DNA of 64,000 nt from Schizochytrium sp. TIO01. Lineage: Eukaryota; Protista; Bigyra: Labyrinthulomycetes. The notes beneath the pieces were generated by a model that saw nothing but the letters and a program-made list of their open reading frames with translations, had not been told where the DNA came from and made no database searches. How positions within the stretch are numbered: the first letter of the stretch is position 1; the number at the start of each line of letters is the position of its first letter. Made by a program: the position numbers and the translations under genes. This document shows, piece after piece, positions 16,501-40,733 of this stretch. Location of the stretch: assembly GCA_004764695.1 (NCBI GenBank), contig SMSO01000031.1, forward strand, positions 8,786,761-8,850,760, read 5' to 3'.

Positions 16501-19500
16501 CTCTTGGAAACAAGTGCATTCTTCTCGCAGGCAACCAATCCAATCCACGTGCTCCAAGGCAGAGCAGAGTCAAGTCAAGTAAGTGGTCGTCGCCTTGCTT
16601 ACCGTCTGTCACCTCTCCGCCATGATGGCCCACGCCCCTTTCCGACGACCACGCCACGAGGCGCTGAGACTGTTACTAGCCAAGCCAAGCCAAGTCAAGT
16701 CAAGTCAAGTCAAGTCATTGTCGAACGCGATCGCAGCAAAGCCATCCTCCAACCTTGACATCTTCTACGTTTTCTTCAAGTCTGCTCACCTCTAATTCGT
16801 CTTGAACCGTTTCCTTGTCTTGGACCTCGAGTTTTCTATCCCAGTCCCTCGAACAAAGTACGCTCTCGCGCTCATAAAGAGGCTTCTGATACCTACAGAA
16901 CAATCGAAGAGTATCTCGCTTTGATATCGATTGACCCGTCTGAAGCAGCGAGCGACTTGAAGAACCCGCTCACGTCTCTCGTTTTGCTCACTTGGTTGAC
17001 TAAGTTCCTTTATGTATTTATGTATTTATGCATTGATGCATTGATGTGTTTATTTATTCATGCATTTATTTATTTCTGTGGACCAAAGTCGGCGCGCGCC
17101 TTCTTTGACAGTATATACTTACTCCTAAAAATTAATTCAGGAATAATCCACTTATATGTCATTTTTTTTAATTTTTTTAATTTTTACAATTTTATCATGA
17201 TAACTTTTTTTGAATTACTGTATAAAGAAGCAAGATTTTCAATAGTAAATAGAGGGTAAAACAGGGTAGCAATAGCTAAGAACTTAGCTTCTTTCTAAGG
17301 CGCATTGCAAAGAGTCATTATATAAATTAAATAAACACCAGATAATTGGCAAGTGCTTACCCACAGCACCCACTTCTTCTAAACGTTCCCCGCACTGCAG
17401 GGCTTGCGGGTTCCCTCGTTGTGCAAAGGACAGCTTATTCATTCAACTCTTGATTGATATAAATTCTTGCATTCGTTCATTTCATTTACTTCATTTAACT
17501 TAGGCTCTTCGTCTTTCGGATGGAGCATTAGCACAGACTTGGGAATCGACTTGAGGAATGGCGCACGCAAGACTTTGGAAACTTAGCTGCAAGGGACATG
17601 AAGACTCCCCGAGATGGCAGTAAAATTATACAGTCAAGATGGCGGTCCAATCAGCATTATATGGGTATGTGGCTGAGGTTCGTACGCTCCTATTTTCCCA
17701 GTTCCTAGCTCTGCTACAGTAACCTCAAGTAGTTTCAACTTCGCAATTGAACCAACTCAAGGAAGGCAAGCACTTCTCAATCAAGGAGCATCTTAAGAGT
17801 TGGCCCTGTTTCGCATTCGTATTCTGCGAAGTCCAAAACAAAACAACAAAGCAACAACAAAAAACAGCGAGAACCCACGTAAACAGCCTTTTATTGGCTC
17901 CCATTGACGACGAGTTCCCGAGAACAAATGTGGGGAACGCGGGGAGCGGCGCGTGCCGCGCATGATAATGTCAATAGAAGACATAAAGTGGCGATCATCG
18001 AAGATAATTGCTCGTCATGACTCAAGAATCTGATGAAGAGTACATTCATACCTAGTCGCTGGTGGCGGGCTGCAATTGAAGGTGGGCTGGCCATTTCTAT
18101 TGACTTTCTCTCGAGTATGAGGTGGAGGAGCAGTAGTAGGTAGATCATCAATTCTTAAGTGCAAAGGGCAAAGTGAGCAGGTGGAAGGGGCAGCGTAGGT
18201 GCTAGAGTAAGATATAGAAGGGTGCTATGCAGTGAATGAGTAAATCAAATAGTTCGTTCTGTTCTTCAGAAGAACATGCACATACCTACATACCCATGGG
18301 ATGCAATCAATGTCATATCAACATACATAGATACATAGATACATACATTGCTGTTACTCTTATTATCGTTGGGCTAAGTGAAAAGAAGGGAAAGGAACTC
18401 AACTCCAGGAGGAAGAGCTTTAAAGTTTGTTGATGGTCGCAGTAATTCGAATATGAAGAGCGTGGACCGCGTTAAGGCTGAAGGTTGGATTAAATTCGCT
18501 CTTCAAGACCTCCATACAGCTGCACAGAAATCATAGAACCTCGCAAGTTCAAACGTTCAACTCAACGTAGGCAAGCCTTCATTATTTTGTTTTTCTAGCT
18601 AGACAGTGCGGAGAGAACAATTCCATTATGCATGTATTTATTTATTTATTCATTCTCATCGATCAAAATGTATTGCATGCAATTTTAGCAGAAGCAGCAA
18701 ACTCTGCGAAACCCTTACAAGAGACAGGGTGATGTACTGCCTCCTAATTACCACTCTGTACGTCAGTGAACGAAGAAGACCTCGAGAAAGTCCTCGAACA
18801 AGAAAGTGCACGGACTCCAAAAGCTTAAACTTCGAGTCGAGATCACCCACCGCACAGCACGTAGTACTAGGCAAACTTTCTTGTTCTTCACTCTTTTCTC
18901 TTGGAAATATTGCTGGAGCTTCTTCCTACCATCGAGGTGGTTCTTCTTTCTGTTTTCCTACTCCAACCCTGACCCGTGCGTGCGTATCTACTTGCTTTCT
19001 TCACTCGCTAACGTCGGAGAGACCTTGTCTCACGACCAAGAATGAATGAAGCGTATTCGAGACATTGAATGACACTTAGAGTTCTCCTCGCACGTATTCT
19101 CATGCTCATGCAAACCTGATGAAGGAAGGCCTAATTCTTGAAGAAGAATGAAAAGCTGCTGATTTGTCAAGCACTGCCGAGTCGTTGATTATGGGCAGCA
19201 GAGCTGTATTTCTGCAGGCCCAGCGAGCTCGTTGTAAACAAGGCCTCAAGTCAAACGGCACCAGCCTTCAACGAAAGCCGAAGCCTTGAGATGAAGCGGC
19301 GAAGCCTTATTCGCTCACCATTTAGATTGGTTTCGTAAAAATACTTTTATTGTTAGTTTTTAATTAATAATTGATGATAGATGGTTCTAGCAGAGAGGAA
19401 GTAAGAGATGTTTATCTGTGTTTGTAAATAAACTTGCATGTGATGAAAATTTAGAAATTTAGAATATAAAGTAGAAAAAAAGTGGCGCTGAGTTCTGAAG

Positions 19501-21597
19501 TTCTAGCTCAACACCCACACGAACTTTGCAAGCACCTCCAACACCATCCCAAAGTGGCCACGGTCCTGAGCAGTTTGCGCCAATTGCTGTCATCTTCATC
19601 AGTGTGATTGGAGGTCACCTAGTTAGTGTTCCCGCACCAAGATTAGATTAGAACTCAAGCTCTAAAGAACCAAGAAATAAAGCGGTCCCAACCCAGGTCC
19701 GCTCGCTGTCGTCTTGCAAACAAGGCCACCATAGCACAGTAATTGTCAGTTATAGCACATTCGTTGTACGCTCTTGCGCACGCTCATCTGCGGTCGTTCC
19801 CGTTCCAACATCGACAGCTTTCTACCCAAGCTCAACCCGCTTCTGAGTTTGGTTTAATGTACTTTGCTTTGCTTTGCTTTGCTTTACTTACTTTGCTTTA
19901 CTTTGTTTGCACTTTGTTGATCAATCGAATTGGCAATTCGTCGATCGACTCATCGACTGATCAGCTTAGCTAGCTGTCCACCGACAGGGCCTGATCAAGG
20001 GCAGCCTTGGGAGGCACGGGTAACTTTCCATCAAGGCGGTCGAAGACTCGCAGGTAGGCACGCAGGTCCAACTCGAGAGTCTGGAGGTGGCAGAGGCGGG
20101 AGGGGATTCGAGCGTGGACCTCAAGGTGCGCAAAACTAGCGTGCGCTCGAAAAGCGTGTGAACAGAAAAAACAAAGGAAAAAAAAGAAAAAAAGAATTAA
20201 AAAAAGGAAAGAATTCGGAAGAAAGGGAAATCGAAGAGACAACTTGAAAAGAAAAGACAGACAGACATAGTACAAAAGGCAAAAGAAGACAGACAAACAT
20301 GTATTGATTCATTCATTCCTTCATTCTTCGTGCATGCATCGCAGCGAACGAGCGACCAGGCAAGCAAGCAGACAAACAAAAGACCAGGCAGACTCGAGTC
20401 AGCCGCCCGCTCTCCAGACTCGAAGCTGCTCGAAGTGGCCTGCGGAGCAAACTTTCAACCATCCTTCTACAAGCGGCATCGGCATCTCCACCTCTGGCGG
20501 TGACGACTCCTGTAGCAACAACAACTGCAACAGCGGTGGCGGCAGTCTTAGACTACAATACCAAATCCACCAACAACCTCAACAGCCTCAGGTATACTCC
20601 ACGACCTCGGAGAACCTCAGGGGCAAAATCTGCAAAAGTCCAACGAACCTGGGCTACAAACAGCGGAACTGAAAGGTTACCTAAGTGCGGGAGCCCATCC
20701 AGAGCAACAAGTGCTCATAAGAAGGCTGTTGGTCTACGGAGAAGCGATTAAGCTTTAAAACCCAAGCTCCAAATCAGATTCGCCACGGGAGGCGCTGGTA
20801 CTGGCAGGTCACGAGGGACAGGAGTAGACGGTGGTTGTGGGAACGACGTGCTCGATTGGCTGCTCCAAGATTGGCGAGATTAGGCGTGCGCCGCTTTCTG
20901 AGAGCGTCCCCTTAATCTTTTAAAGACCCCAATACCTCTTCGTTGGCTGGTGCTGTGAAGCCCGAGCCCTGGCGACGCAAAGCCAAAGCAACACAACGAG
21001 TAAATAACCAGGCAACCACTGGCGAGTCGTACGCTTACGACTCAAGCGTGCGCTTTGCCTGAGTTTGACTGCGTGACTCAACATCGGTGCCGTTATTGTG
21101 TAGGTTATATAAGCGCGCGTAAGTTCCTTAAACCAACCTTGGTGGTCCAAATTAATTATTTGCCGCTTAAAATCGGGCAGCAGCCTATGCACGGGAGGGG
21201 AGGGAACTAAACACGTCTGAACAGAGGAAGCGAAAGGAAAAGAAAGAGAATCACGACTCATCAGGAAGCGCAGCCAACCGAAAGCAACAACATATAGTAT
21301 CAATACATTAATTATCTCGTGAAAGCGCTTGTTAGATATAAGCGAAGGGAGCAGATCGTGTTTTAGCAGATCCAAACACGATTACATTGAATAATAATTG
21401 TATCCTGTGGTACACCGTTCATCCGTCCTCAACAGAGGTGGAAGCCTGTAGCAAAGTTAGACTGGCTGCAATCGAATTGGTGGCACATAAAGGGACAACA
21501 GCAACACCACATCGCACTCAAGTACAGTAGGCAGACCTAAAAAAGCAAATATCAACATCAGAAACAGGTGCAACAGTGGCTGTGAGCTCTGCATAGG

Positions 21598-39274: not shown

Positions 39275-40144
39275 ATGGGGGTTGCAGACATCGTGGATCT
39301 AGTAGCCAAGGGGGAGGGGTGGCCTGCAAATGAAGAGGCTGCAAGCACTGCCTCGAGATCTCGTGCGTTGAGCACAGCTCTGGCGTACGCGCGGCTCTTC
39401 GCAACAAGGGATTTTGAGGCCAACAGCGAGGGGCTCTCCGCATCTGTGACAGCAGACTCAGTACAAAAGAATGACCAAGTTAACTCCCAGAACAATATTG
39501 AAAAGGCACCGGAACCTGCACCGATGAGCAAAAATGATGCATGTGAAGACGCGGATGGAAAGGATGGCGATGCAAACAGTACCTGCGTGCACATTGTTGG
39601 TGCTGACTTCGTAGAAGCAAATGACCAGGCGACGCAGGTATTTGAGGAATTCTCACGATGGCTGAAGGCGACTCAGGGTATAGATAAACTTAACGTGGTG
39701 CTTGTAGGACCCAATGTCCCACTTGCACTGGACGGGAGCGAGATGATAGACAAAGAGCTCGGTATCTCCGTGTATATGCGATCTTGCACATATGAAGAGA
39801 TGCTAGAGGCAAAGGATAAGGATGTCCCAAAGGCTGTTCTTGCCATGCTTTTCAATGCTGGAATTTGGGGCTACGATTCCTGGGCTGCAACCTTGTGTAC
39901 ATTAATGGACCTTGCCGTACCAACAGTGGTGACTTCATACAATGGCTGGGAGGCCGAGGATGATCAAGACAGTATCGAAGAAGCTCTGGAGGGCAAAGCA
40001 GTTGAGTGGCTCTGGGAACCTGAACAGAATCCGTTTGGGTCCAACATTCACCGCCCGGCTGGTGTCGAGAACCGCACTTGCGCGGATAACGCTTTCTGGC
40101 AATGCTTTCGACCAAAACAATTACAAAAGGTGAACCTGAAGTAG
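39275..40144 (+). CDS. MSS51 C-terminal-like domain protein (no MYND finger seen)
   Basis: VHIVGA..E, VVLVGP, FNAGIWGYDSW..TL, PTVVTSYN..EAEDD, NPFGS, N.FW pattern typical of the MSS51-C domain. Confidence 0.7.
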   Translation: MGVADIVDLVAKGEGWPANEEAASTASRSRALSTALAYARLFATRDFEANSEGLSASVTADSVQKNDQVNSQNNIEKAPEPAPMSKNDACEDADGKDGDANSTCVHIVGADFVEANDQATQVFEEFSRWLKATQGIDKLNVVLVGPNVPLALDGSEMIDKELGISVYMRSCTYEEMLEAKDKDVPKAVLAMLFNAGIWGYDSWAATLCTLMDLAVPTVVTSYNGWEAEDDQDSIEEALEGKAVEWLWEPEQNPFGSNIHRPAGVENRTCADNAFWQCFRPKQLQKVNLK

Positions 40145-40588: not shown

Positions 40589-40596
40589 TATAAATA
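40589..40596 (+). promoter_or_regulatory. TATA-like element upstream of the tRNA gene
   Basis: TATAAATA begins 40 nt before the mature tRNA 5' end. Confidence 0.45.
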
Positions 40597-40628
40597 CCTT
40601 GGTTCCGCTCTGCATTTCACGACGCAAT

Positions 40629-40722
40629 GCGCATGTCGTATATGGGTATTATCTTAGCCTTCCATCTACCAAATCGGTAGGCATGATAGCTGATGAAGGG
40701 GGTTCGAGTCCCTCCATGCGCT
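40629..40722 (+). tRNA. tRNA-Gly (anticodon TCC) with a 23-nt intron at 40665-40687
   Basis: Acceptor stem GCGCATG/CATGCGC; anticodon stem TTAGC/GCTGA with loop CT-TCC-A^A; T arm GGGGG-TTCGAGT-CCCTC; B-box GGTTCGAGTCC; discriminator T at 40722. Confidence 0.92.
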
Positions 40723-40727
40723 CATAA

Positions 40728-40733
40728 TTTTTT
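40728..40733 (+). terminator. RNA polymerase III oligo-dT terminator
   Basis: T6 run 5 nt downstream of the tRNA discriminator base. Confidence 0.7.

Follow-up and report, generated by a model that had tools for sequence, protein, structure and literature searches.

A tRNA-Gly(UCC) gene of the labyrinthulomycete Schizochytrium sp. TIO01 probably descends from a bacterial-type trnG(ucc), most likely that of its mitochondrion, which would have become a spliced nuclear family decoding GGA and GGG codons in a glycine system with U at the discriminator position (N73) throughout. The gene and its flanking signals occupy 40589-40733 of a 64,000-nucleotide (nt) window, the whole stretch of DNA analysed (contig SMSO01000031.1, positions 8,786,761 to 8,850,760 of the forward strand), and bare coordinates below are window positions. 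The window lies at 8.79 Mb of its contig, in an assembly of 64 Mb and 37 contigs. Published accounts give bacterial tRNA-Gly a U at N73 and that of the eukaryotic cytoplasm an A (PMC3990555, PMC9908026, PMC9976931, PMC8754408); A73 in the eukaryotic cytoplasm is described as "always" found (PMC3990555) or "absolutely conserved" (PMC9908026). If a tRNA gene of organellar or bacterial origin has come to decode in the cytosol and has acquired a eukaryotic intron, this is a functional transfer of a kind seldom documented.

The gene is an interrupted one. With introns allowed, ARAGORN makes a single call: it draws the cloverleaf of a tRNA-Gly(tcc) spanning 40629-40723, in which position 37 is followed by a 23-nt intron. 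Under permissive filters, positions 1-71 of the Rfam model RF00005 align to 40629-40722, and the insert falls within the anticodon loop; at 39.4 bits (E 3.3e-7), the match exceeds the gathering score of 29 and places this segment among the tRNAs. Default ARAGORN over the whole window and a default-filter Rfam scan both found no tRNA, because of the insert. The acceptor stem is GCGCATG/CATGCGC, the anticodon is UCC, and the gene carries the glycine identity elements listed in PMC9976931: C35, C36, G1-C72, C2-G71, and G3-C70. The 5' exon holds the acceptor 5' strand, the D arm, the anticodon stem 5' strand, and the residues C32 U33 U34 C35 C36 A37; the 3' exon holds the anticodon stem 3' strand, a 4-nt variable loop, the T arm, the acceptor 3' strand, and U73 (T40722). 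CAT follows directly, so no CCA is encoded.

A preliminary description of the window, made from its letters, had already recognized a tRNA-Gly(UCC) with U73 and an insert between positions 37 and 38, and both ARAGORN and RF00005 bear this out. It had also listed a perfect B box, a poor A box, an upstream TATA, a T6 run, and no encoded CCA, all of which can be read from the sequence. The A-box consensus and the B-box consensus, GGTTCGANNCC, are well established. The TATA-like string TATAAATA may act as a promoter element for RNA polymerase III (Pol III).

The intron has features of those removed by the eukaryotic splicing machinery. Its base -3, G40685, is complementary to C32 (C40659), as had been proposed, and is invariant in all seven copies of the gene (see below). 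The proposed CTACC/GGTAG hairpin (40666-40670 with 40676-40680) appears in the minimum-energy fold of the precursor. In this fold the acceptor, T, and anticodon stems are retained and the 3' splice site falls within an internal loop. G-3 is paired there with C35, not C32; the sequence is compatible with the anticodon-intron pair rule, which this fold does not prove. Domains of the tRNA-splicing endonuclease (PF01974) score above cut-off at two loci in the genome, C31:8928944 and C33:3118655. The gene shares with yeast-type pre-tRNAs cut by the Sen/TSEN endonuclease a 37/38 intron, a possible C32/-3 pair, a 3' splice site in a predicted loop, and endonuclease domains encoded in the genome. It differs in isotype: to our knowledge, tRNA-Gly is not among the usual intron-containing tRNA families in model eukaryotes. 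Its splicing is a prediction. A captured UCC gene would give a dated example of tRNA intron gain.

Matching the 145-nt stretch 40589-40733 against the genome found six further copies, so the nuclear UCC family comprises seven: the window copy, one at C33:3924668, and five in tandem on C34. Both exons are identical in all seven copies, and the intron lies at 37/38 in each. The introns are 23-25 nt long, and their differences are confined to the hairpin loop and a single base elsewhere. All seven copies retain the trailer CATAnTTTTT; the upstream flanks have diverged, and TATA-like strings stand at a similar distance in five of the six other copies. A functional family would be expected to look like this, and decaying inserts would not. 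Six further copies that share the same exons also rule out a chance origin of the gene-like structure.

A dead insert of mitochondrial or bacterial DNA, or contamination of the assembly, would fit the failure of default tRNA finders and the weak A box, but either is already close to excluded. The seven copies combine identical exons with differing introns and flanks; they have a conserved terminator and, at the canonical site, an intron that is missing from the mitochondrial and bacterial genes. Sequence flanking the window copy (on the 3' side to 40957) gave only chance-level matches to the mitochondrial genome, and the contig, more than 8.8 Mb long, carries the gene among eukaryotic ones: open reading frames (ORFs) of the window encode a protein kinase, a PP2C, a WASH-complex subunit, and an MSS51-like protein. 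A recent nuclear copy of mitochondrial DNA or an organellar pseudogene was rejected likewise, given the 75% identity to mitochondrial trnG, the unrelated flanks, and the invariant exons of the seven copies. A metagenome scan for another intron-bearing bacterial-type UCC gene found none.

The body of the tRNA is not of the eukaryotic kind. For alignment, identity, and tree building the spliced sequence was joined; scans of sequence collections used exon-1 or single-stretch patterns. Identity of the nuclear UCC sequence is 77.8% with E. coli glyT, 75% with mitochondrial trnG of the same organism, and 63% with its nuclear GCC tRNA. Identity to 34 distinct bacterial UCC tRNAs averages 79% (maximum 84.7%), versus 62-64% to eukaryote-type UCC tRNAs from eukaryotic metagenome contigs, a reference of only four distinct sequences, all A73. 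The bacterial set was obtained by scanning one genome per prokaryotic species with a pattern built from exon 1 and glyT, and is hence biased in the 5' half; the 3' half, unused for selection, was therefore scored separately: there, identity to bacteria averaged 77% (maximum 86%), and identity to the eukaryote-type UCC tRNAs was 60-64%. In a maximum-likelihood tree, a split with support 98/91 divides eukaryote-type GCC and UCC tRNAs, including the organism's own GCC, from the bacterial, nuclear, and mitochondrial UCC tRNAs.

These identities, the 3'-half comparison, and the tree all favor the earlier suggestion that the exons are bacterial or organellar rather than eukaryotic; the E. coli glyT string given in its support is correct, and the D and anticodon arms are indeed close to glyT. 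With glyT and other bacterial UCC tRNAs, the gene shares U73, G1-C72, C2-G71, G3-C70, a 4-nt variable loop, and nearly the same D and anticodon arms. It differs from them in its nuclear location, its 23-nt intron at 37/38, its Pol III T-run terminator, its lack of an encoded CCA, and a D loop shorter by 1 nt. Compared with the class of bacterial and organellar tRNA-Gly(UCC) genes, then, it has their U73 and the closer sequence (against small, partly biased references), but is not uninterrupted as they are. There is good evidence that the body is of bacterial or organellar type, by resemblance or descent; the gene itself is not a bacterial or organellar one now.

Could the gene be a vertically inherited eukaryotic tRNA-Gly(UCC), made to look bacterial by shared constraint or convergence? 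tRNA-Gly(UCC) is constrained everywhere, the anticodon-loop motif CCTTCCAAGC recurs across domains, and the eukaryote-type references are few. However, the difference between 62-64% and a mean of 79% recurs in the half unused for selection, and the well-supported tree split leaves the organism's own GCC tRNA squarely among eukaryotic sequences. Vertical descent is quite unlikely.

Within the bacterial and organellar group, the nuclear and mitochondrial UCC tRNAs are sisters (support 90/79), which is only a moderate argument that the donor was mitochondrial and not another bacterium. The two share U73 and a 4-nt variable loop; the mitochondrial gene is unlike the nuclear one in being intronless and AT-richer, with a different D arm and unrelated flanks. 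Direct horizontal transfer from a free-living or symbiotic bacterium, yielding a gene that otherwise works as proposed here, is unlikely. Identity to some bacteria (up to 84.7%) exceeds the 75% to the organism's own mitochondrial gene, a point that fast, AT-biased mitochondrial evolution would soften by lowering raw identity. The pattern of the D and anticodon arms (positions 8-37) matches more than 120 bacterial species, mostly Gammaproteobacteria, and a nuclear gene for a bacterial-type glycyl-tRNA synthetase (GlyRS2, see below) likewise looks bacterially acquired. The pairing of the nuclear and mitochondrial copies in the tree points the other way, and 71 nucleotides are too few to name a donor.

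What does the tRNA decode? Contig C37 is the mitochondrial genome (41,662 bp, 37% G+C), with cox1, cob, cox3, nad, and 21 tRNA genes, all on one strand. It encodes trnG(ucc) at complement 19436-19507, with U73 and without an intron. The idea in the preliminary description that this genome might lack trnG(ucc) thus fails, and with it the main reason to suppose import: the nuclear family fills no gap in the organelle tRNA set. The nuclear genome, for its part, was scanned with patterns spanning the anticodon loop to the T loop, with reversed-pattern scans as a control. Whole-genome scans for intronless UCC genes found only mitochondrial copies, and those for intron-bearing UCC genes only the seven known copies; the scan for CCC found no tRNA-Gly(CCC) gene, its candidates being tRNA-Glu genes or chance matches. 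The leftover UCC and CCC matches were at the reversed-pattern control level or were tRNA-Glu, and the sampled match loci contained no tRNA; later matches were judged by coordinates and reversed-pattern controls. The four eukaryote-type UCC tRNAs from metagenomes would match the scan patterns, so the scans were able to find a standard gene. Glycine codons in seven window ORFs are GGA 79 (the commonest), GGG 37, GGC 59, and GGT 48, such that GGA and GGG make up 52%. Most likely, the nuclear UCC family is the cytosolic decoder of these two codons rather than a substitute imported by the organelle.

The opposite proposal, that the nuclear UCC tRNA serves mainly for import into mitochondria, draws on its likeness to mitochondrial trnG (75% identity, sister in the tree, U73) and on a bacterial alpha2-type GlyRS as a candidate for charging it inside mitochondria. 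It is nevertheless very unlikely: the organelle has its own trnG(ucc), the pattern scans found no other nuclear reader for two codons that specify 52% of the glycines in the window ORFs, and U73 also occurs on eukaryote-type GCC genes, where it is no mark of an organellar destination.

Indeed, the U73 of the UCC gene is not peculiar to it. tRNA-Gly(GCC) gave 33 identical pattern matches in the genome, and ARAGORN called two sequence variants in sampled loci. All 24 GCC genes in distinct flanking contexts have T73; the next base is also T, and a T run follows each. (The GCC genes were examined at loci L043-L072, e.g. L043:1470-1540.) A TATA-like string lies between -55 and -25 in 13 of the 24. 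The GCC body is of ordinary eukaryotic type and groups with eukaryotic GCC tRNAs in the tree. As a control, 129 of 129 metagenome GCC genes with the same body pattern (55 distinct sequences) have A73. In this genome, those Val and Thr tRNA genes that were sampled have the usual A73. With T73 in all seven UCC genes as well, neither UCC nor GCC carries the A73 of a standard eukaryotic cytosolic tRNA-Gly, and all nuclear tRNA-Gly genes found in the genome have U73.

This survey bears on two points of the preliminary description. U73 had been taken as a mark of bacterial origin; found also on eukaryote-type GCC genes, it is by itself no such mark here. The broader proposal of a transferred and domesticated nuclear gene keeps the support of multiple copies, conservation, a canonical intron, and a Pol III terminator, but loses U73 as a peculiar relic of the transfer. 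Like the A73 class of eukaryotic cytosolic tRNA-Gly, the genes are nuclear, multi-copy, and of Pol III-type organization, and the GCC body is the standard eukaryotic one; unlike that class, GCC and UCC both have U73, and the UCC body has only the 62-64% identity to eukaryote-type UCC given above. The cytosolic glycine system thus appears to run on a U73 discriminator.

Such a system would be at odds with what is known about D-aminoacyl-tRNA deacylase (DTD). Activity of eukaryotic DTD1 on Gly-tRNAGly is reported to be 10-100 times higher when N73 is U, and U73 in eukaryotes has been reported only in the mitochondria of plants and jakobids (PMC8754408, PMC10954443). In one model of early eukaryotes, DTD1 editing of U73 would have forced the mitochondrial tRNA-Gly to switch to A73 (PMC8754408). 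If true, a genome-wide conversion to U73 would be a natural exception to the published universal A73/DTD code in eukaryotes. A full-text literature search found no paper combining the discriminator or tRNAGly with thraustochytrids.

The DTD1 gene of this genome (Table 1) is of eukaryotic type; its C-terminal tail of ~90 aa is lysine-rich and coiled-coil-like. Its discriminator preference is the key to the U73 question. PMC8754408 gives no residue-level signature of the switch in the DTD code, so this preference cannot be typed by sequence. Nuclear tRNA-Gly genes that all have U73, beside a eukaryote-type DTD1, are a natural test of the discriminator/DTD model of PMC8754408, and also of how strongly N73 governs recognition by alpha2-type GlyRS. 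Plant and jakobid mitochondria likewise combine U73 tRNA-Gly with a eukaryote-type DTD1 (PMC8754408, PMC10268278), but there U73 is confined to organelle-encoded tRNAs, whereas here nuclear genes carry it, and their products would have to work in the cytosol. Related thraustochytrids (Aurantiochytrium) are culturable, so experiments are feasible.

A second DTD-fold gene is present at C34:3820611-3820982 (+ strand; L082:1141-2220), in a 359-aa ORF with a long N-terminal extension. Its best solved relative is mouse ATD (5xaq). The ATD paralogue has been described as animal-specific.

Two alpha2-type GlyRS genes could supply the charging enzyme. An alpha2beta2 GlyRS is ruled out as the partner, as PF02091 has no match in the genome. 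GlyRS1, on C32, is closest to human GARS (629 bits) and to stramenopile enzymes; its orthologues start with a WHEP-like helix and have no evident presequence, and its first exon in this genome lies upstream of the ORF examined. GlyRS2 (Table 1) is of the bacterial alpha2 type. The identical protein is also encoded by a full-length MMETSP transcript, and orthologues of GlyRS2 occur in other labyrinthulomycetes (71% identity to Hondaea), after which the next matches are bacteria at 47-50% identity. GlyRS2 starts near the conserved core, directly after an in-frame stop; neither it nor its orthologues show a clear presequence. For two aminoacyl-tRNA synthetase genes of the genome, the best named relatives are those of the thraustochytrid Hondaea fermentalgiana, at 89% and 71% identity. 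The bacterial alpha2-type GlyRS is reported to charge both A73 and U73 tRNAs (PMC3990555, PMC8754408), and one is also reported as the mitochondrial enzyme of the jakobid Andalucia godoyi (PMC8754408, PMC10268278). Charging of the U73 tRNAs here would be by the eukaryote-type GlyRS1, by GlyRS2, or by both. Of the bacterial-type GlyRS/DTD code once suggested for this organism, then, the nuclear bacterial alpha2 GlyRS is found; the alpha2beta2 enzyme is absent, and DTD1 is eukaryote-type.

Together, these observations provide a concrete hypothesis for the origin and function of the UCC family. The exons would descend from a bacterial-type trnG(ucc), most likely mitochondrial; the captured gene would have replaced the ancestral eukaryote-type isoacceptor and gained its intron later. 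Pol III would transcribe the gene through the perfect B box, the weak A box, and possibly the TATA-like element, stopping at the T run. Trimming of the ends would make U73 the discriminator, CCA would be added, and the eukaryotic tRNA splicing endonuclease would remove the 23-nt intron at 37/38. The mature tRNA would then decode GGA and GGG in the cytosol.

Several considerations weigh against this hypothesis, in addition to the biased bacterial set, the four eukaryote-type references, and the higher identity to some bacteria (85%) than to the mitochondrial gene. The tree is built on 72 columns, with the mitochondrial sequence on a long branch. The scans assume a standard T loop, and a second UCC or CCC gene of unusual form could escape them. 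It is also odd that a tRNA needed for about half of the glycine codons has seven gene copies when GCC has at least 30. DTD1 acts faster on U73 (PMC8754408), so a U73 cytosolic tRNA beside a eukaryote-type DTD1 should be costly. Finally, transcription, splicing, CCA addition, and charging of the UCC gene are all predicted from sequence.

A more far-reaching scheme is tentative, and on balance doubtful. Here, the whole cytosolic glycine-tRNA system would have been converted to U73: the GCC tRNA would have kept its body with a change at N73, and the UCC tRNA would have been replaced by the mitochondrial or bacterial gene. Conversion would be accompanied by a cytosolic bacterial alpha2-type GlyRS or a retuned eukaryotic GlyRS, and by a change of DTD1 preference back.

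Table 1. Coordinates of the window UCC gene and of the candidate partner enzymes
Feature	Position	Strand	Remarks
TATA-like element TATAAATA	40590-40597	+	~39 nt upstream of tRNA position 1
5' exon, positions 1-37	40629-40664	+	ARAGORN with introns and RF00005; invariant in 7/7 copies
A-box region TCGTATATGGG	40636-40646	+	weak: 5/9 specified consensus positions match
Intron, 23 nt, between 37 and 38	40665-40687	+	ARAGORN with introns and RF00005
3' exon, positions 38-73	40688-40722	+	ARAGORN with introns and RF00005; invariant in 7/7 copies
B box GGTTCGAGTCC	40701-40711	+	full match to consensus GGTTCGANNCC
Trailer CATAA, then T6 (40728-40733), Pol III terminator	40723-40733	+	read from sequence
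GlyRS2, bacterial alpha2-type, 460 aa	C31:5599919-5601229 (L078:829-2217)	-	closest to bacterial alpha2 enzymes
DTD1	C6:1816333-1816773 (L081:1498-2220)	+	eukaryote-type, closest to human DTD1

Other observations concern the surroundings of the gene and the tRNA sets of this genome and of the metagenomes. The MSS51-like ORF of the window lies ~480 nt upstream of the tRNA gene, at 39275-40144 (+ strand); it contains an MSS51 C-terminal domain (E 3.8e-26) and has no apparent link to the tRNA. tRNA-Val(GAC), which puts G34 in a four-codon box, is encoded by many nuclear genes next to tRNA-Val(CAC) genes, e.g. C8:29573-29644 and C36:2879181-2879252; the sampled loci (L011-L025) included no Val(AAC) gene. 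Eukaryotic tRNAs of the four-codon-box kind use A34 and avoid G34 (PMC10954443).

Some metagenome eukaryote-type UCC genes have A73 followed by an encoded CCA: L262:2751-2918, L279:820-894, L311, L312, and L325. Eukaryote-type GCC genes lie on the same contigs. Nuclear tRNA genes of eukaryotes do not usually encode CCA, so these genes could be from a virus or an unusual protist.

The mitochondrial genome contains a repeat region (C37:25086-35222; L040-L041) with eight near-identical tRNA-like elements, spaced ~0.7-1.1 kb apart with one gap of 4.5 kb. Every element combines a T arm with a GGGTAG/CTACCC helix resembling an acceptor stem, and ARAGORN calls none of them as a tRNA. Contig C15 (~71.7 kb) carries the mitochondrial tRNA set twice, ~41.1 kb apart, and looks like the mitochondrial genome assembled a second time and concatenated, with a repeat count that differs from that of C37.

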